A stretch of DNA of 64,000 nucleotides from positions 124,001-188,000 of IMG/VR virus record IMGVR_UViG_3300003877_000001. One strand, written 5' to 3'. Of this stretch, positions 1,354 through 34,251 are shown one piece after another. The notes under the pieces were generated by a model, which saw nothing but the letters and a program-made list of their open reading frames with translations, was not told the DNA's origin and ran no database searches. The position numbers were made by a program, and so were the translations under genes. Numbering within the stretch: position 1 is the first letter of the stretch; each line of letters starts with the position of its first letter.

Positions 1354-1434
1354 TGTACGGTTGAACAGGTGGTGAGTTCCGCACACTGTAAATGTGCTGC
1401 TTCGGCTATGGGGGTTCGATTCCCTTCCGTACAA
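1354..1434 (+). tRNA. tRNA-Tyr(GTA)
   Basis: Acceptor TGTACGG/CCGTACA; anticodon arm GCACA-ctGTAaa-TGTGC; variable arm; TTCGA loop. Confidence 0.85.
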
Positions 1435-1618
1435 CAATTAACATTGTTAATTGAATTAGACTATATTAAAAAGTAATATAGTTCAAAAAACAATATTAAA
1501 ATTGTCATAGAATGGTACATGAAGGACTTATTGATAAAAATAATATAATTCCATTATCAGAATATTTACCTGATAATTGGAAAATTTATTATTATGGATA
1601 ATTTAAAATGATAAAATA

Positions 1619-2163: not shown

Positions 2164-2236
2164 GCATCCGTAACTTAACTGGTAAAGTAGGTAACTCTTA
2201 ATTATCGAGATAAGGGTTCGACTCCCTTCGGATGCA
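2164..2236 (+). tRNA. tRNA-Lys(CTT)
   Basis: GCATCCG/CGGATGC; GGTAA-ctCTTaa-TTATC. Confidence 0.9.
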
Positions 2237-2398
2237 CAACACTACACATTGTGTAGTGTATCGCAAATCAAAATAAAAATTTTTAATTTGTTGATTATTA
2301 ATATATTATAATCAAATATCGTGTATTGCGATATGCGATATAGTAATAATTTGAGTAAAGTATTGTTTTTCGGTACTTATCTCTAAAAATTACTAAAT

Positions 2399-2481
2399 AC
2401 ATCGGTGGCAGAGAGGCTTATGCACCTGACTTTTAATCAGGGTTGTTCGCAACAACGTGGGTTCGAATCCCACCCGATGTA
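2399..2481 (+). tRNA. tRNA-Lys(TTT) with long variable arm
   Basis: ACATCGG/CCGATGT; CCTGA-ctTTTaa-TCAGG; V-arm GTTG-ttcg-CAAC. Confidence 0.85.
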
Positions 2482-2532: not shown

Positions 2533-2605
2533 GCCATCATAACTCAATTGGTAGAGTATTCCGCTTTTAACGGAAGAGTTGAGGGTTCAAGTCCCTCTGG
2601 TGGTA
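2533..2605 (+). tRNA. tRNA-Lys(TTT)
   Basis: GCCATCA/TGGTGGT; TTCCG-ctTTTaa-CGGAA. Confidence 0.9.
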
Positions 2606-2654
2606 CTAGTTACTTTTGGTTTTTAAATAGTATTTATATTTAAAAGCTGATAAT

Positions 2655-9792: not shown

Positions 9793-10461
9793 ATGAAAGT
9801 TACAGTAGATGCAGTCGTATTCTCGTATTATGAAGATGAATTAAAAGTTCTTTTAATTAAAAGAGCATTTGAACCATACTTAGATATGTTTGCTTTAGCA
9901 GGGGGATTTCTTTTAGATAATGAAACAGCAGAGGATGGGGTACTTAGACAATTAAAGGAAGAAACCAATGTTGAGTTGGATTATTTAGAACAACTATGTA
10001 CATTTACTGATGTTGATCGTGATCCTAGAGAGAGAATAATCTCAATAGCACATTATGGATTAATTAATCCCAATAAACATAGTTTAATTACTAATATTCA
10101 TGCAAAAGAAGTTAAATGGTTTCCAACATATGGAATAAAATATATTCCATTAGCCTTTGACCATATGGGAATTTTTGAATATGCATTAGAGAGATTGAGA
10201 AATAAATTACAATACGAACCTATTGGTTTTGAATTATTACCAAAATATTTTACTATGAGTGAACTATTAGCATTATATAATGCAATATTAGGTAAAGAAT
10301 TAGATAGACGTAATTTTAATAAGAAAATATTAAGCTATGGATTACTTACAGAAACAACTTTCAAATCGGTGGGTGGTGTTGGTAAACCAGCAAAACTATA
10401 TGAGTTCAACAAAGAAAAGTACGATGAACTCAAAAAAACAGGATTAAACTTTGAATTGTAA
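9793..10461 (+). CDS. nrtR: NrtR-family regulator (Nudix + winged helix)
   Basis: VTVDAVVF..LLIKR, degenerate Nudix box, RDPRER, LAFDH, FTMSEL..LY..ILGKELDRRNF, GKPAKLY. Confidence 0.85.
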   Translation: MKVTVDAVVFSYYEDELKVLLIKRAFEPYLDMFALAGGFLLDNETAEDGVLRQLKEETNVELDYLEQLCTFTDVDRDPRERIISIAHYGLINPNKHSLITNIHAKEVKWFPTYGIKYIPLAFDHMGIFEYALERLRNKLQYEPIGFELLPKYFTMSELLALYNAILGKELDRRNFNKKILSYGLLTETTFKSVGGVGKPAKLYEFNKEKYDELKKTGLNFEL

Positions 10462-10581
10462 TAAGATAAATGCTCAATTTGTGGATATATTGCACCATTT
10501 GAATTGTTTGGCAATAAATGACCTATTTGTGGATTAGAGTATATTGATGATGACGAAGAAGAATATTACTAAATAAAAATT

Positions 10582-10976
10582 ATGAAAAGTGTAAATAATA
10601 AAATAAAGAAACCATTTGTATCAATAGGATTTGATGCAACAGGAAAATTAACATTTAATGTTGATTTAAACAAAACAAAACAAAAAAACTAAACACCGAA
10701 CAATTAGGTGATTTAGGTGGTGCATTTCAAGATGCATTCAATACCATTAATAATAGTGATAGGAAACCTGTATTACATATTTTTGATTTATATAAGAGAA
10801 AAACAGGAATTAATATTAAACCTATCACTATAATTGAATTGGAAGAAATTAAAACATATATTCGCAATGGTGAAAAATTGATGGCAGTTAAAATCTTTAA
10901 AGATTATACTTCTGAAGGTTTAAGACAATCAAAAGATTTTATTGATTTTTTAATTAACTATATGAAGTATTCATGA
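10582..10976 (+). pseudogene. frameshifted ORF with L7/L12 C-terminal-like motif
   Basis: Frame breaks in the AAAAC repeat near 10670-10690; C-terminus KLMAVKIFKDYTSEGLRQSKDFID. Confidence 0.45.
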
Positions 10977-11566
10977 TAGTACCAATAAGATTATATGGTG
11001 ATGTATGTTTAAAAGAAGAGGCGTATGATGTTGATCTTGAACAAGATGATAATATTGTTGATTTAGTTAAAGATTTATTTGATACATTAAATACATCAGG
11101 TTCTGGTGTTGGTTTAGCTGCTACTCAATTAGGTGTGCCTTTAAGAGTATTTGTTGCAAAACATAATGATTTTCAATCTGAATTCATTAATTCAGTAATT
11201 TTAACTAAAAGTGGTGAATTAGAATCAGCAGAAGAAGGATGCTTATCAATACCAAATGTTGGTATTGATATTGAAAGACCTAAAGCAATTACATTATCAT
11301 ATCAAGTTTTAGATGATGGTGTATTAATTAATAAGACAGAAGAATTTGAAGGTTATATTGCTAGAATAATTCAACACGAAATTGATCATCTTAATGGGAT
11401 ATGTATAACAGATAAAGTTAAAGGGTTAGCAAGAACAATATTACAACCAAAATTGAAAAAGATATTGTTAGGTAGAACACAATATAGATATCCTACACTA
11501 CATAAAACATATCCAGATTATAAAAATGTAAGTGAAGAAATAATTAATAAATATATAAAAGAATGA
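10973..11566 (+). CDS. def: peptide deformylase
   Basis: GVGLAATQ, EGCLS, QHEIDHLNG. Confidence 0.95.
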   Translation: MIVPIRLYGDVCLKEEAYDVDLEQDDNIVDLVKDLFDTLNTSGSGVGLAATQLGVPLRVFVAKHNDFQSEFINSVILTKSGELESAEEGCLSIPNVGIDIERPKAITLSYQVLDDGVLINKTEEFEGYIARIIQHEIDHLNGICITDKVKGLARTILQPKLKKILLGRTQYRYPTLHKTYPDYKNVSEEIINKYIKE

Positions 11567-11952
11567 CGGTACAAAACACAATAATGACTGATCTTAAAAT
11601 AGCCATGAAAAATGGACAAACAAACGCAAAAAATTTATTGCGAGTTGTTATTGGTGAATTTAACAGAGAAGGTAAAACAGTATCTGATGAAAGAGCAATT
11701 GCTATTATGAAAAAAATGGTTGAAAATGCTAAAGATCAAGGAAATGAAATTGAAGTAACTATTCTTGAAGCATATCTTCCACAACAAATGGACGAATTTG
11801 AACTTAAAAGAGTTTTAATGAATCACATTATGAATTTAAATTCACCTTCCATGAAAGATATGGGGAGAGTTATGGGTGAATTAAAAGTAGTATATGGTGG
11901 ACAATATGATGGTAAAATGGCATCTACTATTGTTAGAGAATTATTAAAATAA
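11563..11952 (+). CDS. GatB/YqeY domain protein
   Basis: DLKIAMK, EVTILEAYLPQQM, MKDMGRVMG..DGK. Confidence 0.85.
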   Translation: MTVQNTIMTDLKIAMKNGQTNAKNLLRVVIGEFNREGKTVSDERAIAIMKKMVENAKDQGNEIEVTILEAYLPQQMDEFELKRVLMNHIMNLNSPSMKDMGRVMGELKVVYGGQYDGKMASTIVRELLK

Positions 11953-12351
11953 TGAAATTATTTGATGTAATTATAGATGGTGGTTATAAGGGACATTATG
12001 TTGAAGCTAATGGATATGATGAAGCAGCTAATAAATTGTTAAAATTTTTAAAATTTGAAAATGAAACAAAATCTGTTTTAGATGATGATGGGTCACTTAA
12101 AAAAGATGTGAATGATATTGAAGTGATATCAGTGAAAATAGTTGCTGATTTTATAATAAAATAAAAGAGGGTATTACAAAGCTAGTTGAGAATGTGACGG
12201 TATTAGTGCAGAAGAGGTCAATAGGTAAGGAGTATAATGAAGCAATAGTCATTCAAATTATACAAATCAGTCCGAACAACTAAAAGTGACTTACCCTTTT
12301 TTTATTTAAATAAATAGGTTTTACCCTTAGAAAATAGAAATTACCCTTGGT

Positions 12352-12690
12352 ATGAACAAAAAAAAGAAAATACGACAAAATTTTAGAGATTCCGTGTTTG
12401 CACGTGATAAACATAAGTGTCGTAAATGTGGTGCAGAAAACGTTGATTTAGATGCACATCACATTACAGATAGAAATAAAATGCCAAATGGTGGATATAT
12501 TAAAGAAAATGGTATATCTTTGTGTCAAGAAGAATGTCATATTAAAGCAGAAGAATTTCATTCTTCAAATGGTGAACATTGTGAAAAGGGTTTTCATCCT
12601 AATGATCTTTATGAATTAATTGGATCAAGTGAAAAAGAAGCATTCGATGCATCAATAATGTTAACCAAAAATGGTTTGATAAATATGTAA
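12352..12690 (+). CDS. HNH domain protein
   Basis: RDKHKCRKCG..LDAHHI..NGISLC..CH. Confidence 0.8.
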   Translation: MNKKKKIRQNFRDSVFARDKHKCRKCGAENVDLDAHHITDRNKMPNGGYIKENGISLCQEECHIKAEEFHSSNGEHCEKGFHPNDLYELIGSSEKEAFDASIMLTKNGLINM

Positions 12691-12994
12691 TTCAAGAATG
12701 TGTAGTATCTCAAATTAGATAAAATTATGAAAGCAACAGAAGCAAGAGCATTAGCATATAAAAAAAATATAAATGATACAAATAGTCAATATGCTAAAAT
12801 TATAGAAAAAATAATTTTTGAAGCAAAAAAAGGTAATTATAATATGGATTGGTATGAATCATTTAATGATGTTGTTCGAGAAAAATTAGAATCACAAGGA
12901 TATATTGTTGGAAAAACCCATCACGATCAACGAGATGGTTCTACAACAAAAATAAAATGGTAACCTTTAGGACATCCTAAACGTATATACTAAT

Positions 12995-13627
12995 ATGAAT
13001 TATTTAGAAGCAACAAAATATCCAAAGACAATGCATTTTGATTTCTCTGAATCATTACAAAATGATGATAGAAGATTAACGACATTGGAAGGTTTCATTG
13101 GTAAACGAGTAATCGTTACCGAGAAACTTGATGGAGAAAATTCGACAATTTACAATGACTATTACCATCCAAGATCGGTAATTGATGATGGTCATGAATC
13201 TAGAAATTGGCTTAAAGGGTATATACCCAATTTTCAGTATAAAATTCCTAAATATTGGAGGGTATGTGGTGAAAGTATGTATGCTGAACATTCAATAAAA
13301 TATGAAGAATTAAACACATTCTTCTATGCTTTTAGCATGTGGGATAATTTAAATATGTGTATCTCTTGGGATGAATTTGAACACCATTGTGATATATTAG
13401 ATATTGAACACGTTCCTGTTCTTTATGATGGTGTTTTCGATTATGTTAAAATAAAAGAGATTTATGAAAATTTAGATTTTAATAAACAAGAAGGTATTGT
13501 TGTTAGAGTTGCTTGTAAATTTCGTTATGATGAATTTCAAACACATACTGCCAAAGCAGTTAGACCTGCACATGTATCAACAGATGAACATTGGAAAAAA
13601 ACTTGGAAACCAAATAAATTAAAATAA
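12995..13627 (+). CDS. second RNA ligase family protein
   Basis: KYPKT.H, TEKLDGEN, CGE, EGIVVR. Confidence 0.85.
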   Translation: MNYLEATKYPKTMHFDFSESLQNDDRRLTTLEGFIGKRVIVTEKLDGENSTIYNDYYHPRSVIDDGHESRNWLKGYIPNFQYKIPKYWRVCGESMYAEHSIKYEELNTFFYAFSMWDNLNMCISWDEFEHHCDILDIEHVPVLYDGVFDYVKIKEIYENLDFNKQEGIVVRVACKFRYDEFQTHTAKAVRPAHVSTDEHWKKTWKPNKLK

Positions 13628-13858
13628 TGGATAGAAATTGGATATTTAGAATATTAGGAATTGTAGTGAATTTTGCACTACTCTATATTGTTGGTGCATT
13701 TATTGCTTGGGATGCAAACCCATTGCATTGGTGGATAATAACATCGACATTAGGAAGAGTATTATTTATGTTTTTTGCTTTTGCAAATGTTGCAATAAAT
13801 TTAAGTGAAAATTTAAGTGATAATTAAAATAATAATGAAATTTATAAAAAATGTTTAG

Positions 13859-14323
13859 ATGAATAATAAACACATACGCATTTACATAGACATGGATAAT
13901 GTTTTATGTGATTATCAAAAAGCACATGACGAAGCAATAAAGAATAAACCTGAAATTGTTTATCCACAATCACAATATGGTTTCTTTAGAGATTTAGAAC
14001 CAACTAATTGTGCATTGATGGGATTTACTGTATTATCTAAAAACTTTGATGTTTGGATATTAACAGCACCATCAGTACAAAATCCAATGTGCTATACTGA
14101 AAAAAGAGAATGGGTAGAGAAAAATTTAGGTTTTGATGCTGCTAAACGATTAATATTATCACCAGATAAATCACTTTTAATTGGTGATTATCTTATTGAT
14201 GATATGGTAGAAGGTAGAGCAAAACAAAACGAATTTAATGGAACTCACATTGTTTTTGGGAATGAAGTATATCCTGATTGGTTATCAGTATTGGAATATT
14301 TCAAACAATACTTTAAAACATAA
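13859..14323 (+). CDS. 5'(3')-deoxyribonucleotidase (HAD)
   Basis: IYIDMDNVLCD, ILTAP, K..WV, GDYLIDD. Confidence 0.85.
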   Translation: MNNKHIRIYIDMDNVLCDYQKAHDEAIKNKPEIVYPQSQYGFFRDLEPTNCALMGFTVLSKNFDVWILTAPSVQNPMCYTEKREWVEKNLGFDAAKRLILSPDKSLLIGDYLIDDMVEGRAKQNEFNGTHIVFGNEVYPDWLSVLEYFKQYFKT

Positions 14324-14397
14324 AAACATGAAAAATTACGAAGAACTAACAATACTTTAAAACATAAAAACATGAAAAATTACGAAGAACTAACAAT
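14304..14397 (+). repeat. 44-bp exact tandem duplication spanning a gene junction
   Basis: AACAATACTTTAAAACATAAAAACATGAAAAATTACGAAGAACT twice; ATGs at 14328 and 14372. Confidence 0.85.
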
Positions 14398-14836
14398 TGA
14401 ATTAATTGATTATTATAAAAATAAATATGATGGTGAATTAATTATAAAATCAATTGAATACAAAACAGTATATATTAATGGAAATCATATTAAAAAATTA
14501 GAACATGTCTATGAAATTTATGTTCTTTTAGATTTATTAACCCCAAATGCAAATTCTTGGAATATTCCGAATTTTTTTAAAAGTAAAGTTTCTTTTGAAA
14601 ATGCAATTAAAATGTTTAAAGTTGCTGTAAATGGATATTTAGAAGCCTTATTAATTGAAAAAGAGTTTGTAGAAATAAGTTCAGAGAAAAGACTTTTAGT
14701 TGATTTATTATCAAAAGATATTAATTCTTTAAACGAAGAAGATTTTGATTTCATGATTTCACATTATCTAAAAATAGAAGAATATTTGAAAGTTCAAAAA
14801 TATGAAAATTTAAAAAAAAAATATTATGAAAAATAA
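14372..14836 (+). CDS. hypothetical protein
   Basis: 154-aa ORF overlapping the next start. Confidence 0.6.
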   Translation: MKNYEELTIELIDYYKNKYDGELIIKSIEYKTVYINGNHIKKLEHVYEIYVLLDLLTPNANSWNIPNFFKSKVSFENAIKMFKVAVNGYLEALLIEKEFVEISSEKRLLVDLLSKDINSLNEEDFDFMISHYLKIEEYLKVQKYENLKKKYYEK

Positions 14837-15734
14837 AAAAATAATTCTTCTCTGTGGAATCCCTGCTAGTGGAAAATCTACATGGGCAAATAAATTTATA
14901 TTAAATAATTCTAATTATGTTAGAATTAATAGAGATATGTATCGTTTAATGCTTGATGGTTCTCAAATAATGGATTTTAAGGGAGAAAAGTTAGTAACTG
15001 AATTAGTTAATAATGCAATTGTTTTGGCTACAAAGTCTAAGTATAACGTACTTGTTGACCAAACTAATGTTAACTTAAAGTACTTGAATGAAATGGTTGC
15101 ATTTTGTGAAAAAATTGCAGATGTTGAGTTTAAAATATTCGATATAACAGAAAAAGTCGCCATCGAAAGAGACTCAAATAGAGATGCTAAAGTAGGTGCA
15201 AAAGTAATCAAAAAAATGTACAAAAACTACTTAAATCTATTCTCTTCTAATTTCGATTTCTCAACAAGAAAAAGAAAACCACATATTGCTACCAACATCA
15301 AGTGGGAGCGTGATGGTACTTTACCAGATGCAGTGATTTTTGACATTGATAGTACTATAGCACATACTCAAGGTAAAAGAGGGATATTTGATTGGGATAA
15401 AGTTAATCTTGATATTGTAGATGAAATTGTTCTTGAAACAATTAAATCATATAAGGACTATGGTTATAAGATTATCTTTGTTACGGGTAGAGATGGTGTT
15501 TCACGAAAAATGACAGAAGATTGGTTAATACATAATAAAATACCTTTTGATATGTTATTCACTAAACCTAAAAATGATTTCAGAAAAGATATTATAAATA
15601 AAACAGAAATTTATCATAATTTCATTAAACCAAATTATAATGTATTAGCAGTTTATGATGACCGTAATTCTGTTTGTAAAATGTGGAGAAATTTAGGAGT
15701 AAAATGCTACCAAGTTCAAGAGGGTGATTTTTAA
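14826..15734 (+). CDS. pseT: polynucleotide 5'-kinase/3'-phosphatase
   Basis: P-loop GIPASGKST and RINRD; HAD FDIDST, VTGR, YDDR. Confidence 0.9.
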   Translation: MKNKKIILLCGIPASGKSTWANKFILNNSNYVRINRDMYRLMLDGSQIMDFKGEKLVTELVNNAIVLATKSKYNVLVDQTNVNLKYLNEMVAFCEKIADVEFKIFDITEKVAIERDSNRDAKVGAKVIKKMYKNYLNLFSSNFDFSTRKRKPHIATNIKWERDGTLPDAVIFDIDSTIAHTQGKRGIFDWDKVNLDIVDEIVLETIKSYKDYGYKIIFVTGRDGVSRKMTEDWLIHNKIPFDMLFTKPKNDFRKDIINKTEIYHNFIKPNYNVLAVYDDRNSVCKMWRNLGVKCYQVQEGDF

Positions 15735-15767
15735 TCCTCATTTTTTTTTTATTAAATAATAAATAAT

Positions 15768-16190
15768 ATGATAAAACAATTAGAAGTTTACAAGAAGTTT
15801 CAGATGAAATATCCTAAATCAATTTTAGGTGGTAGTTTTGGATTATTCCTTAGAGGAATTGATTTAAAAAGAAATTTAAAATATTCTGATTTGGATATTA
15901 CGACCCCTGAATTTACACCTAAAGGTGGATTAGATAATGATAAAAGTAGTTCAGAGGATTTTGACTTTACATTATATATACATAACAATAATCATTATCT
16001 TAAAATGGATATACGTGTAGTTGAAGACCATAAATATGATGTTGTAAATTACGAAGGATTTGACTTTAACGTAAAAACAAAGAAAGATATATTATATTGG
16101 AAACAACAATATGCTGAAAAGGGGGTAGAAAAACATATTGATGATTTAATAACAATAGCAACTGGTGTTAGACCCAAACGATCCATATGA
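15768..16190 (+). CDS. nucleotidyltransferase-like protein
   Basis: LGGSFGL...SDLDI motif. Confidence 0.5.
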   Translation: MIKQLEVYKKFQMKYPKSILGGSFGLFLRGIDLKRNLKYSDLDITTPEFTPKGGLDNDKSSSEDFDFTLYIHNNNHYLKMDIRVVEDHKYDVVNYEGFDFNVKTKKDILYWKQQYAEKGVEKHIDDLITIATGVRPKRSI

Positions 16191-16244
16191 TTTACCGTTT
16201 TAATAACTTATAAAATATTTTTAAAAATACTTGACTTTATTATT

Positions 16245-16310
16245 ATAATAGTGTAACTTTGACACATATTAAACGTATTTATAAATGAATTAGTGTATTA
16301 AATACATATA
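16245..16310 (+). promoter_or_regulatory. two candidate NrtR operators overlapping an ECF-like promoter
   Basis: TAGT-GT-aactttg-AC-ACATA and TAGT-GT-attaaat-AC-ATA (GT-N7-AC); TGTAAC-N16-CGTAT at 16252-16278. Confidence 0.6.
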
Positions 16311-16328
16311 GACTAAAATAGTTATATT

Positions 16329-17234
16329 ATGAGAGAAGAAATAAAAGAATATACAATCGGAGTTATAATTGGAAGATTCCAAATACATGAACTTCATGAT
16401 GCACATAAAGAGATGATTAGTGAAGTACTAAGTAGACACCAAAAGGTTATACTATTTTTAGGGGTATCACCTACATTATCAACAAGAAGAAATCCTTTAG
16501 ATTATCGCTCAAGAAAATTAATGATTGAAGAGATATATGGAAATGAAATGATTATCTTACCTATCAACGATAGAAAGTCTGATGAAATCTGGTCAGACCA
16601 AGTAGATAGTAAAATCAGAGAGGTAGAGCCAATTGGTTCTGTTGTATTATATGGATCAAGAGATTCATTTATTCCTCATTATAAAGGAAAGTATGATACT
16701 ATTGAATTAGTTCCTAAATCATTTATTTCTGCAAGCGAAGTAAGAAAAGAAATTTCTAAAAGAGTTGAAAGAAACAAAGATTTTAGAGCAGGAGTTATTT
16801 ACTCAACATATAATACATATCCAACAGTACATCCCGTTATAGATGTTGCCATTTTAAATGAAGATGCAACTGAAGTATTATTGGGAAGAAAAAAAAACGA
16901 ACAACTTTTTAGATTTGTTGGTGGATTTACCGATGTAACTGATGAATCGTATGAACAAACAGTTGTAAGAGAAGCACATGAAGAAACTGGTCTTGCTGTT
17001 GGTGATGTTAAATACATTACTTCAACAAGAGTAGATGATTGGAGATATAGATCAAATAATGAGCGTTCAGTAATGACTTCATTTTTCAAAGCAAAGAAAA
17101 TCTTTGGTATGGCAAAACCCAATGATGATATTGTAGCAGTTAAATGGCATCAAATTTATACTTTACGACCTAATGATGTTGTTGGTGAACACGAAAGATT
17201 GGTTGTTGCATTAAAAGAAAACTTAAAACTATAA
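16329..17234 (+). CDS. nadM: bifunctional NMN adenylyltransferase / Nudix ADP-ribose hydrolase
   Basis: GRFQ..H.AH, RNPL, ISASEVR; Nudix GGF..VREAHEETGL; DD. Confidence 0.9.
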   Translation: MREEIKEYTIGVIIGRFQIHELHDAHKEMISEVLSRHQKVILFLGVSPTLSTRRNPLDYRSRKLMIEEIYGNEMIILPINDRKSDEIWSDQVDSKIREVEPIGSVVLYGSRDSFIPHYKGKYDTIELVPKSFISASEVRKEISKRVERNKDFRAGVIYSTYNTYPTVHPVIDVAILNEDATEVLLGRKKNEQLFRFVGGFTDVTDESYEQTVVREAHEETGLAVGDVKYITSTRVDDWRYRSNNERSVMTSFFKAKKIFGMAKPNDDIVAVKWHQIYTLRPNDVVGEHERLVVALKENLKL

Positions 17235-17238
17235 AATC

Positions 17239-18726
17239 ATGAAAAATATAATAAATTTAATATTAAAAACAGATAGTTATAAATTAGGTCATTGGCAACA
17301 ATATCCAACAGGAATGAGAAAAGTGTATTCTTATATGGAAAGCAGAGGGGGTTTATTTCCTAAAACATTATTTACTGGATTAAACATTTATCTAAAAAAA
17401 TATCTCAAGGGTGCTGTTGTAACAATGGAAGATATTGATTATGCTGAAAAATTTACAGAAGAACATTTAGGTAGAAAACTATTTAATAGAGATAAGTGGG
17501 AATATATTGTTAAACGATATGGTGGTAAATTACCCATAAGAATTAAAGCAGTTAAAGAAGGTTCTTTAGTTCCAGTTAGTAATGTTTTATTGACAATAGA
17601 AAGTACCGACCACAATTGTTATTGGTTAACAAATGTTCTTGAAACTTTATTAATGAAACTATGGTATCCAACAACAGTAGCAACAAATGGATTTTATAGT
17701 AAACTTTTAATTAGTCAATATTTAAATAAAACAGCAGAAAACAAAGATTCTAATATTTGGAAATTACACGACTTTGGTTATAGAGGTGTATCTAGTGAAG
17801 AAACGGCAGGAATTGGTGGTATGGCACATCTTATTAACTTTAAGGGTAGTGACACCATTGAGGGAATTCTTTATGCTAGAGAGTATTATAATGAACATAT
17901 GGCAGGGTTTTCAGTTCCAGCGTCTGAACATTCAGTAGCATCTTCATTTGGTAAAGATTTCGAAGAAGAATATTTTTTAAATATGTTAAAACAATACCCA
18001 ACAGGTTTAGTATCAATAGTATCAGATACATATAGTGTTTTTAATTTTGTAGAAACAATGTCAACGAAATATAGAAAAGAAATCATAGAAAGAGATGGGA
18101 CTGTGGTATTTAGACCAGATAGTGGGCATCCTGTTGAAATAAACTCAAGACTGATTGATTTACTTTGGAATAAATTTGGTGGAACATATGTAAATGGTTA
18201 TAAATTATTAGATTCTCATGTAAGACTAATCCAAGGTGATGGTATTGACATTAAGATGATTAATGATATATTACATATGGGCGAACTTAAAGGATATTCT
18301 GCCGATAATTGGGTGTTTGGTTCAGGTGGTGCATTATTACAAAAGTGGACTAGAGATACTAATGAATTTGCAATTAAAGCATCCTATGGTGAAAGAGAAG
18401 TTGATGGAATTGTTAGTAAATTTTCAATAAGCAAAGACCCTATAACTTCTAAAAGTAAACGCTCAAAGGGTGGGATATTTAAATTAATACCAACAGAAGA
18501 TAGTTCATTCTTAACGATTTCATCTGAAAATTCAAAAGATAAAGGTACTTTTAGTAATTATGTTGATTGTTTAGATGTTGTATTTGAAAATGGTGAAATA
18601 AAAAGAGAGCAAACCATAGAAAATATTCGTAATATTGCAGATAATCATCTTGAAGTTGAATTAAAAGAAAATTACGATGTTATCGATAAACTAAATTTTG
18701 AAAAAAATTATGAAAAATTAAATTAA
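17239..18726 (+). CDS. nadV: nicotinamide phosphoribosyltransferase
   Basis: TDSYK..H, LHDFGYRG, PASEHS, VSDTY, RPDSG, IQGDG, FGSGG. Confidence 0.93.
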   Translation: MKNIINLILKTDSYKLGHWQQYPTGMRKVYSYMESRGGLFPKTLFTGLNIYLKKYLKGAVVTMEDIDYAEKFTEEHLGRKLFNRDKWEYIVKRYGGKLPIRIKAVKEGSLVPVSNVLLTIESTDHNCYWLTNVLETLLMKLWYPTTVATNGFYSKLLISQYLNKTAENKDSNIWKLHDFGYRGVSSEETAGIGGMAHLINFKGSDTIEGILYAREYYNEHMAGFSVPASEHSVASSFGKDFEEEYFLNMLKQYPTGLVSIVSDTYSVFNFVETMSTKYRKEIIERDGTVVFRPDSGHPVEINSRLIDLLWNKFGGTYVNGYKLLDSHVRLIQGDGIDIKMINDILHMGELKGYSADNWVFGSGGALLQKWTRDTNEFAIKASYGEREVDGIVSKFSISKDPITSKSKRSKGGIFKLIPTEDSSFLTISSENSKDKGTFSNYVDCLDVVFENGEIKREQTIENIRNIADNHLEVELKENYDVIDKLNFEKNYEKLN

Positions 18727-18743
18727 AAATTAAATTAAAAATT

Positions 18744-19940
18744 ATGAATTATCAAAATATACAATATAAACCATCTACATTGAATGCAATAATAAATGCA
18801 TTCAATGCTAAAAATTTACGTAATTGGAATGTATTATATTTTTACTTTGATATACACCAAACAATATTATATCCTGACTATAATAATGAAGAAGAATTAA
18901 AATTCTATCCATACATAAAAGAAATATTACAACATCTAAGTAAACAAAATGATATTGTACTTGGAATTTATACGTGTTCATATCCTGATCAAATAAAAAA
19001 ATATTTTAAATTTTTTGAAAAAAATAATATTAATTTTAAATATGTAAATAAAAATCCAGAAGCAATGAATACAAAATATGGGTATTATGTAGATAAACCA
19101 TATTTTAATGTCCTTTTTGACGATAAATGCGGTCTAAATGCTGAGATTGATTGGTATTTCATTGCAGAATATTTTGGTTTAATTAATAATTCTAAAAATG
19201 ATTATTATGTGTATGTATATCTCGATCCAAGAAAAAGTGGCTTTTATAATTCAGAAAGTTTCATTTTCCCAAACGAACCCTTTTATGTTGGTAAGGGTAA
19301 AAATAATAGACATTTTGACCATTTAAAAGAATCCGAACTGAACAAAGAAAACGGTAATATTATAAAACAAAGAAAAATAAAAAAAATATTATCATTAAAT
19401 AAAACTCCTATAATATATAAAATATTTGATAATGTTAACGAAAATTTTGCATACCATGTTGAAAATTTATTAATCCTAGATATTGGTAGAGTTAATAATA
19501 AAACAGGTGTTTTAACTAATCTAAATGACGGTGGATATGGTAACAAAAATTGTGCAATAACCAATAAAACAAAAGAAAAAATTTCTAAGTCGTTAAAAAA
19601 TTATCATATAAATAATCCTATTAGTGACGAAACTAAACAAAAAATTGGTGATGCTAATAGAGGTAGAAAATATTCTAAGGAATATATTAAACATCTTAAA
19701 GAAATAAGAAAAGGAACAAAAATTACCCATAGAAAAAAATATTATTTAATATCACCAACAAATGTTAAACATTCTTTTATAGGTAAAGATAGATTAATTG
19801 AATTTGTTAAAAAGGAAAATTTATCATATATAATTTTAATGAAAAAAATAAACAGTGGAAAAATTTTAAATTCCGATATTTTAAGAAAAACTCAACAAAC
19901 ATTAAATTCAATTGGGTGGGAAATAATAAAATCAAAATAA
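18744..19940 (+). CDS. HAD-like domain fused to GIY-YIG-like/NUMOD3 endonuclease
   Basis: N-terminal FDIHQTI..KPYFNVLFDDK; then YYVYVYLDPR..FYVGKG..R, LTNL.DGG, ETKQKIG. Confidence 0.7.
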   Translation: MNYQNIQYKPSTLNAIINAFNAKNLRNWNVLYFYFDIHQTILYPDYNNEEELKFYPYIKEILQHLSKQNDIVLGIYTCSYPDQIKKYFKFFEKNNINFKYVNKNPEAMNTKYGYYVDKPYFNVLFDDKCGLNAEIDWYFIAEYFGLINNSKNDYYVYVYLDPRKSGFYNSESFIFPNEPFYVGKGKNNRHFDHLKESELNKENGNIIKQRKIKKILSLNKTPIIYKIFDNVNENFAYHVENLLILDIGRVNNKTGVLTNLNDGGYGNKNCAITNKTKEKISKSLKNYHINNPISDETKQKIGDANRGRKYSKEYIKHLKEIRKGTKITHRKKYYLISPTNVKHSFIGKDRLIEFVKKENLSYIILMKKINSGKILNSDILRKTQQTLNSIGWEIIKSK

Positions 19941-20807: not shown

Positions 20808-21492
20808 ATGAAATGGAATAAAAACGAAATAGATTACTGTAAAGAAAAATTTTCTAATGGAGAATCTCTAATTGATATTAGTAATGAATTAAATAGAACA
20901 ACAAAAGCAATTCAAATTAAAATGAGTCGATTAGGTGTTTTTAGACCACAAAAAAAATATTATATGACCTATATTTGTGGAAATTGTAAAACAACATTTA
21001 CTGCATTAATAAGTGAGAAAAGAAAATATTGTTCTGAACAATGTGCATCAATAATAAATAATAAAAAAAGAAAAAAAATGTAAACGTTGTAAGCAAACAA
21101 TTAATAATAATAATAACATTTATTGTAGTAAAAAATGTGAAATGTCAAACAAAGAAAATTATTATTTTACTAAAATAGAAAATAATGATTTAAATGATAT
21201 TAATCATAATACAGCAGAAAGATGGGTTAAAAGATATTTAATTCACAAATATGGTGAAAAATGTATGAAATGTGGTTGGAGTGAAATTCATAAAATAACA
21301 AAAAAAGTGCCGATCCAATTAAACCATATTAATGGTGATTCAGATAATAATAATTTATTAAATGTTGAGTTACTTTGCCCTAATTGTCATTCATTAACAC
21401 ATAATTTTGGATCATTAAATTTTGGTAATGGTAGAACAAAAAGAAAATTAGAGAGAAATAAAAGATATAAAAAAGTTAGCGTGTCCGATTGA
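20808..21492 (+). pseudogene. HNH endonuclease split by a frameshift in an A-run (ORFs 20808-21083 and 21142-21492)
   Basis: Second frame is open from 21079 (CKRC..YCSKKC); QLNHING..N...LLCPNCH; stop codon lies inside tRNA-Cys. Confidence 0.7.
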
Positions 21493-21545
21493 TAAGGTGG
21501 ATGGTTGCAACCCATTTTATGCAGGTTTGAATCCTGTCGCTAACT
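21475..21545 (+). tRNA. tRNA-Cys(GCA)
   Basis: GTTAGCG/CGCTAAC, U73; GATGG-ttGCAac-CCATT. Confidence 0.85.
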
Positions 21546-22982: not shown

Positions 22983-23055
22983 AGTGATGTAGTTTAGAGG
23001 TCAAAACGCCACTCAGAGATAGTGGAAATCGGTAGTTCGATCCTACCCATCACGA
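22983..23055 (+). tRNA. tRNA of undetermined identity (loop caGAGat, A33, short V-arm)
   Basis: GTGATG/CATCAC; CCACT/AGTGG; T-arm GGTAG-ttcgatc-CTACC. Confidence 0.55.
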
Positions 23056-23061
23056 CTAAAA

Positions 23062-23146
23062 GCCGATTTCGCATAGTGATCGATTGCACTGGTCTTGTAA
23101 ACCAGTAGGTTTATACCTCACGTCAGTTTGAATCTGACAATCGGCT
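23062..23146 (+). tRNA. tRNA-Thr(TGT) with long variable arm
   Basis: GCCGATT/AATCGGC; CTGGT-ctTGTaa-ACCAG; V-arm AGG-tttata-CCT. Confidence 0.82.
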
Positions 23147-23174
23147 CAAAAAATTGACTCAATGAGTCAAATAT

Positions 23175-23489: not shown

Positions 23490-23562
23490 CAAACAAATGT
23501 TTTATTGATAAATAAATATTTTGTTAACGTATAAGTAGACGTACTTATATAGGAGTTGTTTT

Positions 23563-23632
23563 ATGTAAATAGCATAATGGCAATGCAGCACCATAAAAGG
23601 TGTGTATGTAGGTTCGATTCCTATTTTACTAA
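23563..23632 (+). pseudogene. degenerate tRNA (6-nt anticodon loop)
   Basis: D- and T-arms present; GCACC-ataaaa-GGTGT; mispaired top of acceptor. Confidence 0.5.
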
Positions 23633-23650
23633 AACAACTATAACAATTAT

Positions 23651-33716: not shown

Positions 33717-33786
33717 GTTGCCATAGGTTGGTGTAAAATATTAGTCTCTAAAACTAATAACGAGAGTTCGAATCTCTCTGGCAGCA
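33717..33786 (+). tRNA. amber-suppressor tRNA (anticodon CTA)
   Basis: GTTGCCA/TGGCAGC-A; TTAGT-ctCTAaa-ACTAA; GAGAG-ttcgaat-CTCTC; weak D-arm. Confidence 0.78.
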
Positions 33787-34251
33787 CTTAAATATTAAAA
33801 ATATGAAAGATAATGTAGAATATAAAATAGTTTCTAGTGATTCAACTGATTTCATGGGAAATAGAGTAAGTAAATTAATGTCAGAGGGTTGGGTATTATA
33901 TGGAAGTCCATATTTTAATAGTCAAAAAGAATCTAATTGTCAAGCAATGGTTAGACACCCAAAAACTAAAGAAATTTTAAACGATTAACATGTCAAAAGT
34001 ATATGTTGATTTAAGAGTAGAAGCATTTGAAGAAGATTTAAATGATTTTCTAACATTATTAGGAAAAATTAATTATACAGGACGTATTGGTGCAAGCAGA
34101 AGCATTAAAGTAAATATTGATGGTGATGGTTCTGGTTATATTGGTGTTAAAAGACTAAGTGATAAAAAACCAATACATGAATGGGTAAATTTAGATGAAA
34201 AACAATTAAAAAAAGTGTCTGACGGTGAAGACTTTGACGACCATTATATAG

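Follow-up and report, generated by a model that had tools for sequence, protein, structure and literature searches.

A jumbo phage recovered from a hydrothermal-vent metagenome carries a well-formed tRNA-Lys(UUU) with an additional hairpin arm, which lysine tRNAs normally lack. Forty-four distinct sequences of the same design were found in other uncultivated viral contigs, while a comparable scan of 185,579 prokaryote species gave a single genuine example, which appears to be viral. The gene is a Lys paralogue with an insertion of ∼11 nt in the variable loop, rather than a Ser tRNA with an altered anticodon. The most favoured, though still tentative, reading is that it is a Lys-accepting spare of altered shape within a diversified Lys set, which may guard against host nucleases that target tRNA-Lys.

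The window examined (64,000 nucleotides) represents bases 124001-188000 of a 325,854 bp viral contig of 27% GC (G000:C1), which CheckV rates as complete and which has relatives in marine sediments. ARAGORN identified 46 tRNAs in the genome, 26 of them within the window, and called the gene of interest as tRNA-Lys(UUU) at 2399-2482. Rfam RF00005 located it at 2399-2481 with 59.1 bits (E 3e-10) against a gathering score of 29, and the minimum free energy fold is a cloverleaf with an extra hairpin (z -2.8). The gene has the 7-nt anticodon loop and the T-loop GTTCGAATC expected of a tRNA, and the paired variable region exceeds the 10 nt expected of class II architecture. It is located between two ordinary class I Lys tRNAs, and the three genes are only 52-66% identical to each other. 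The preliminary description, of a Lys anticodon on a class II body beside two Lys tRNAs with entirely different anticodon stems, was correct, and all three stems had been read accurately. Two details required correction: the register of the variable arm, and the significance of the Ser-like D arm (both below). The coordinates of all features are shown in Table 1.

Table 1. Features of the window and of related contigs (window numbering unless stated)
Location	Strand	Feature	Details
1314-1346 (approximate)		Hairpin plus T-run	Precedes tRNA-Tyr(GUA)
1354-1435	+	tRNA-Tyr(GUA)	First gene of the Tyr-Lys-Lys-Lys cluster
2164-2237	+	Class I tRNA-Lys(CUU)	Anticodon stem GGUAA/UUAUC; acceptor GCAUCCG
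2399-2481	+	tRNA-Lys(UUU) with inserted variable arm	7/5 acceptor/T geometry; discriminator A73 at 2481; no CCA encoded
2399-2405 with 2474-2480	+	Acceptor stem	7 bp
2408-2423	+	D arm	3-bp stem GCA/UGC and G13.A22
2425-2429 with 2437-2441	+	Anticodon stem	CCUGA/UCAGG
2430-2436	+	Anticodon loop	CUUUUAA; anticodon UUU at 2432-2434
2442-2456	+	Variable arm (15 nt)	Stem GUUG (2442-2445), loop UUCG (2446-2449), stem CAAC (2450-2453), unpaired AAC (2454-2456)
2457-2473	+	T arm	GUGGG-UUCGAAU-CCCAC
2533-2606	+	Class I tRNA-Lys(UUU)	Divergent anticodon stem UUCCG/CGGAA
4821-8483	+	Class II (B12-type) ribonucleotide reductase	Intein with LAGLIDADG endonuclease at about residues 319-671
9793-18726	+	Run of likely counter-defence and host-takeover genes	Between the tRNA clusters
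12995-13627	+	RNA ligase (PF09414), candidate tRNA-repair enzyme	E 1.8e-26
14826-15734	+	Polynucleotide kinase-phosphatase, T4 Pnkp-like	AAA_33 kinase (E 1e-15) plus HAD_PNKP phosphatase (E 4e-43)
16329-17234		NMNAT-Nudix protein	
17239-18726		NAMPT	
18744-19940	+	GIY-YIG/NUMOD3 homing-endonuclease-like ORF	Just upstream of the large tRNA array
20.6-26.4 kb		22-tRNA array	
21475-21545	+	tRNA found by Rfam (50 bits), missed by ARAGORN	By eye Cys(GCA) with an odd D arm
22983-23056	+	Leu anticodon on a short class I body	GAG
23062-23147	+	Extra-arm tRNA-Thr(UGU)	15-nt variable arm (4-bp stem, 3 unpaired); U73
23562-23633	+	tRNA-like gene (Rfam 39 bits)	2-base anticodon 'aa' in a 6-nt loop (ARAGORN)
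33717-33787	+	71-nt tRNA, anticodon CUA	Standing alone
G000:C1 112910-112982; 114856-114931		Leu anticodons on short class I bodies	UAA; UAA
G000:C1 2371-2458; 116501-116587; 118720-118804 (outside the window)	-; +; +	Three 85-88-nt tRNAs, anticodon CAU	Long variable arm (CCC-loop-GGG); mismatch at pair 1:72 (A.A, U.U, C.U)
G000:C1 110730-110806 (outside the window)	+	Glu-like tRNA with a 9-nt anticodon loop	Called Leu-CAA by ARAGORN
G000:C1 112265-112337 (outside the window)	+	tRNA-Asp with an A34 anticodon	AUC
Genome 222223-222750		Second RNA ligase (PF09414)	
L002 4359-4441	-	Extra-arm tRNA-Lys(CUU)	Next to an extra-arm UUU copy

To investigate the distribution of this design, IMG/VR was scanned for the lower Lys anticodon arm followed by 16-28 nt and a T loop. 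The scan returned 49 viral contigs from 48 metagenomes, which carried 44 distinct tRNAs forming 34 clusters at 80% body identity; as the pattern fixes the anticodon arm, conservation of that arm in the family is by construction. Fifteen of the 49 contigs exceed 200 kb, against 4 of 80 contigs seeded on class I Lys. A scan for class I Lys in viral contigs yielded more than 112 hits, a lower bound from which no class II fraction can be given. The equivalent scan of one genome from each of 185,579 prokaryote species, the only pattern with which absence from cells was assessed, used a slightly narrower T-loop, which about 18 of the viral hits also satisfy. Two hits were obtained, of which one is a tRNA. 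This gene lies on a 170 kb 'Methanobacterium sp.' MAG contig (PLXT01000115.1), in an array of 11 tRNAs within 8 kb beside PHROG phosphoesterase and RNA ligase genes, and the contig is therefore probably a mis-binned large virus. Among GenBank phages, the 1.4-kb cluster matched only the Tyr and class I Lys genes, three other family members gave no match at E 1e-8, and no cultured phage carrier was found. Literature searches found no description of a long-arm tRNA-Lys. The design is not limited to the UUU isoacceptor, as one of the phage loci (L002) also carries an extra-arm Lys(CUU); 5 of 25 Lys(CUU) genes in these loci have the extra arm.

The extra arm is under selection. Two contigs related to the window were compared; one (L005) is the same phage (100% identity over 3354 bp) and was not counted as independent, while the other (L004) is an independent relative with a ribonucleotide reductase 71-74% identical in nucleotides and the same location of the tRNAs next to that gene. 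The L004 extra-arm Lys tRNA is 82% identical to that of the window, whereas the spacers are unalignable. Among five members of this subfamily, a small sample for a covariation count, 99% of cells are paired and 11 of 24 pairs carry changes on both sides (0/500 shuffles as high), including 6/7 acceptor pairs and 3/4 pairs of the variable stem. The supported register is a 4-bp stem directly after position 43, a tetraloop and three unpaired bases, which is 95% paired, while the Ser-like 5-bp register is only 60% paired. A covariance-model alignment which mixed all isotypes was excluded from these counts. Across all 44 sequences the variable regions fold at -2.87 kcal/mol against -0.53 kcal/mol for shuffled sequences (0/200), and most carry GNRA tetraloops. 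Their geometry, with medians of 15 nt, a 3-bp stem and 1 and 3 unpaired bases, matches co-resident Tyr tRNAs and not the Ser tRNAs (18 nt, 5 bp, 1 and 1 unpaired). The search of sequencing runs found only DNA-type contig runs, from the source vent sample and marine sediments, which gave presence and variants but no transcripts; the one variant seen in the sediment contigs (G2449T) falls in the loop of the arm. Promoter-like sites were at chance level (16 against 15) and the upstream ATTGCGATATGCGATAT is not repeated elsewhere.

Within its own genome the D and T arms of the tRNA most resemble those of the two phage Ser tRNAs (D 77-84%, T 94-100%), which initially suggested a Ser-derived body. 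This was overturned by comparison with L004, in which the extra-arm Lys(UUU) has exactly the D arm, and the CCUGA/UCAGG stem, of the L004 class I Lys(CUU), and differs mainly by the insertion in the variable loop. Across the family the nearest D arms belong to Lys genes (15.7 of 44) rather than Ser (1.7), Tyr (0.5) or Leu (2). The best acceptor match among co-resident tRNAs is a class I Lys in 12 of 24 loci, against about 6 expected; in the window, the acceptor of the upstream Lys(CUU) is the best match (5/7) among the other 45 tRNAs of the genome. The gene is therefore a Lys paralogue that gained an arm, and this has happened or persisted in many lineages.

The determinants of E. coli LysRS (U34, U35, U36 and A73) are all present, and A73 occurs in 39 of 44 family members, as in co-resident class I Lys tRNAs; the remaining five have U73. 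Co-resident Ser tRNAs mostly have G73, which SerRS is reported to require (PMC7609411). The tRNA has A73 in place of G73, C2:G71 in place of G2:C71 and a short arm that is not of the Ser type (about 5-7 bp with one unpaired base on each side), although C11:G24 is present. Leu identity in E. coli depends on A73 and the A15:U48 tertiary pair; A73 is present, but the tRNA has G15 and C48, whereas the phage's own Leu tRNAs have A15 and U48. Only U35, A73 and the arm geometry are shared with Tyr, and G34 and A36 are absent. No LysRS-type or SerRS-type core was found in the phage (searches covered the Lys/Asn/Asp and Ser/Thr cores), so a host enzyme must act. AAA codons in the intein-containing ribonucleotide reductase, to which homologues align on either side of the intein, correspond to K at 77 of 190 positions in three homologues; the next most frequent residues are E, R, T and N, with no Ser, Leu or Tyr signal. 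Reassignment was rejected for AAA, ACA and ATG, and AAA is the most used codon of the phage, at 7.8%. The window also contains a tRNA of the amber suppressor type, but TAG read-through raises ORF coverage only from 72.5 to 76.3%, and genome-wide TAG recoding is therefore not evident.

Genes of a T4-type tRNA repair module, a predicted Pnkp and an RNA ligase, lie 10-13 kb downstream of the Lys cluster, in a region between the tRNA arrays that also encodes an NrtR-like Nudix-wHTH regulator, a peptide deformylase, an NT5C nucleotidase, an NMNAT-Nudix protein and NAMPT. The last two form an NAD+ salvage pair, similar to phage pathways reported to counter NAD-depleting defences. A second ligase and a CCA-adding enzyme are located elsewhere in the genome, and no RtcB was found. 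In T4, Pnkp and ligase repair tRNA-Lys cut by PrrC (PMC10264068). tRNA-Lys(UUU) is also cut by PARIS AriB, which a T5 tRNA-Lys with stem changes resists (PMC11464382), and by a bacterial Schlafen (PMC13056530). Septu and retron-Eco7 PtuAB are reported to act on tRNA-Tyr, Septu at its variable loop.

In the favoured interpretation, the 4-5-nt variable loop of a functional tRNA-Lys(UUU) has been expanded into a short hairpin. As the tRNA keeps what LysRS is known to read together with a standard Lys anticodon arm, it would be charged with lysine by the host enzyme and would decode AAA. The three structurally unrelated Lys tRNAs, with Pnkp and ligase, would act together as insurance against defences that disable tRNA-Lys, such as PrrC, PARIS AriB, or Schlafen-type or Cas13-type nucleases. 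The class I Lys(UUU) copy varies the anticodon stem and this copy varies the body, so that a nuclease or toxin recognizing the compact class I core or variable pocket would fit it poorly. The sequence analysis itself establishes the tRNA structure, selection on the arm, the Lys ancestry, restriction to phages, the standard meaning of AAA and the presence of repair genes; expression, charging by LysRS, activity of the repair enzymes and evasion of nucleases by the arm are inferred. The known tRNA-Lys nucleases are reported to read the anticodon stem-loop, which this tRNA keeps in standard form, and an effect of the arm on them is conjecture, as is the identity of any nuclease evaded. In addition, LysRS is a class II synthetase that faces the variable-loop side of the tRNA, and the arm could hinder charging. 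Simple codon supply is not excluded as the whole benefit. The earlier inference of either a diversified nuclease-resistant set or a mischarged tRNA is thus partly supported, as the first alternative fits the evidence without being demonstrated and the second is disfavoured.

Among the alternatives, tolerated structural drift survives best, although it is considered unlikely. In this view the arm has no role and the gene simply provides extra AAA-decoding capacity for an A/T-rich phage. Phage tRNA arrays evolve quickly and contain many odd tRNAs, and in an independent sample of 80 phage loci seeded on class I Lys, extra arms on class I isotypes are rare and scattered. However, the compensatory changes, the folding of the variable regions and the recurrence in 34 clusters with near absence from cellular genomes argue against drift, and the design often coexists with a class I Lys(UUU) within 10 kb, which suggests that the two are not equivalent.

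Less likely is a role for the hairpin in stabilizing an A/U-rich tRNA that may be under-modified during infection, or as a handle for a phage protein involved in modification, processing or delivery. GNRA and UUCG tetraloops dominate the arms, and in phages with the class II Lys, extra arms cluster on A/U-rich ANN decoders (Lys CUU 5/25, Asn 7/25, Ile UAU 6/8, Thr UGU 8/28, Met 5/32) and are near zero for Ala, Asp, His, Val and Trp (Fisher p = 1.6e-6). This enrichment was not clearly reproduced in the 80 independently seeded loci and is reported only as co-occurrence; no partner protein was identified, and bacteria with equally A/U-rich tRNAs do not use the design. A decoy, which would soak up or occupy a host anticodon nuclease without itself being used in translation, is similarly improbable. 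The copy presents the common UGA-CUUUUAA-UCA arm while its class I neighbour has a deviant stem and could perform the decoding, and Pnkp and ligase could recycle cut decoys, but a decoy would not need the acceptor stem, A73 and T arm, which are conserved as in working tRNAs, nor the CCA encoded by 26 of 44 family members. Deliberate mistranslation would insert Ser, Tyr or Leu at AAA codons, as nev-tRNAs and allo-tRNAs do. The similarity of the D and T arms to the phage's own Ser tRNAs, C11:G24, and the Tyr-like arm geometry with A73 and U35 speak for it. However, such mistranslation through SerRS, which reads the long arm and ignores the anticodon (PMC7609411), or through TyrRS or LeuRS, is the least compatible with the identity elements, arm register, Lys ancestry and AAA alignments described above, and misreading the commonest codon would damage every phage protein.

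The phage T5 tRNA-Lys that neutralizes PARIS, and the general model of phage tRNAs evading anticodon nucleases (PMC11464382; PMC10264068; PMC11555353), also involve a phage tRNA-Lys(UUU) that duplicates a host function, differs structurally from the usual tRNA-Lys and is encoded in a tRNA array of a large lytic-type phage. The known cases differ by point substitutions in the anticodon stem-loop, while here the anticodon arm is standard and the change is a whole extra arm, with any resistance being conjectural. The T4 Pnkp and Rnl pair is a repair system rather than a tRNA variant, and the ligase here is of the Rnl2/PF09414 type. Nematode nev-tRNAs (PMC3333845; PMC4300185) also have a class II body with an anticodon that is neither Leu, Ser nor Tyr, but are Leu-derived and charged with Leu, whereas this phage tRNA is Lys-derived with Lys identity elements. 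Bacterial allo-tRNAs (Mukai 2017, reviewed in PMC7609411), also found by metagenomics, have a long variable arm and diverse non-Ser anticodons, but have 8/4 or 9/3 acceptor/T geometry and Ser or Ala identity, in contrast to 7/5 with A73. Bacterial tRNA-Tyr shares the arm geometry (about 1 unpaired, a 3-4-bp stem, a tetraloop and 3 unpaired), A73 and U35, but has the anticodon GUA, and the D arm and acceptor of the phage tRNA are related to Lys genes.

Textbook bacterial class II tRNAs are limited to Leu, Ser, Tyr and Sec, and a lysine tRNA with a selected extra arm, recurring in dozens of uncultivated and mostly large phages and essentially absent from cells, is an undescribed tRNA type as far as the literature searches reach. 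If the arm protects against tRNA-Lys nucleases, phage tRNA counter-defence extends from point changes in the anticodon stem-loop to remodelling of the whole body, which would also predict host nucleases that read tRNA shape. If LysRS charges the tRNA, synthetase tolerance to a long arm is broader than assumed, which is useful for engineering orthogonal tRNAs; if it is charged otherwise, it would be a phage-borne mistranslation device acting on the commonest codon. A more speculative and doubtful possibility, which is not excluded, is that large phages deliberately switch the architectural class of the tRNAs most targeted by host defences, adding an arm to Lys and, in the same phages, to Asn, Thr(UGU), Ile(UAU) and Met-type CAU tRNAs, and removing it from Leu(UAA/GAG). 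Shape-reading tRNases or toxins would then fail while anticodon-reading synthetases still charge the tRNAs. This would be a new principle of counter-defence and would supply natural class II tRNAs accepted by LysRS, AsnRS, ThrRS and IleRS.

Other unusual tRNAs were identified in the same genome. The extra-arm Thr(UGU) is the second extra-arm tRNA of a class I isotype in the window and has U73, like the phage's class I Thr(GGU); extra-arm Thr(UGU) was also present in 2 of 14 cases in the independent sample. The three long-arm tRNAs with anticodon CAU may be elongator Met, initiator-like or Ile2-like. The reverse exchange was seen for three Leu tRNAs on short class I bodies, and in phages with the class II Lys, 7 of 11 Leu(UAA) tRNAs are short, against 0 of 10 in the independent phage sample. 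The Glu-like tRNA with the 9-nt anticodon loop and the tRNA-Asp with A34 are both unusual, and the tRNA-like gene with a 6-nt anticodon loop may be degenerate or frameshifting.
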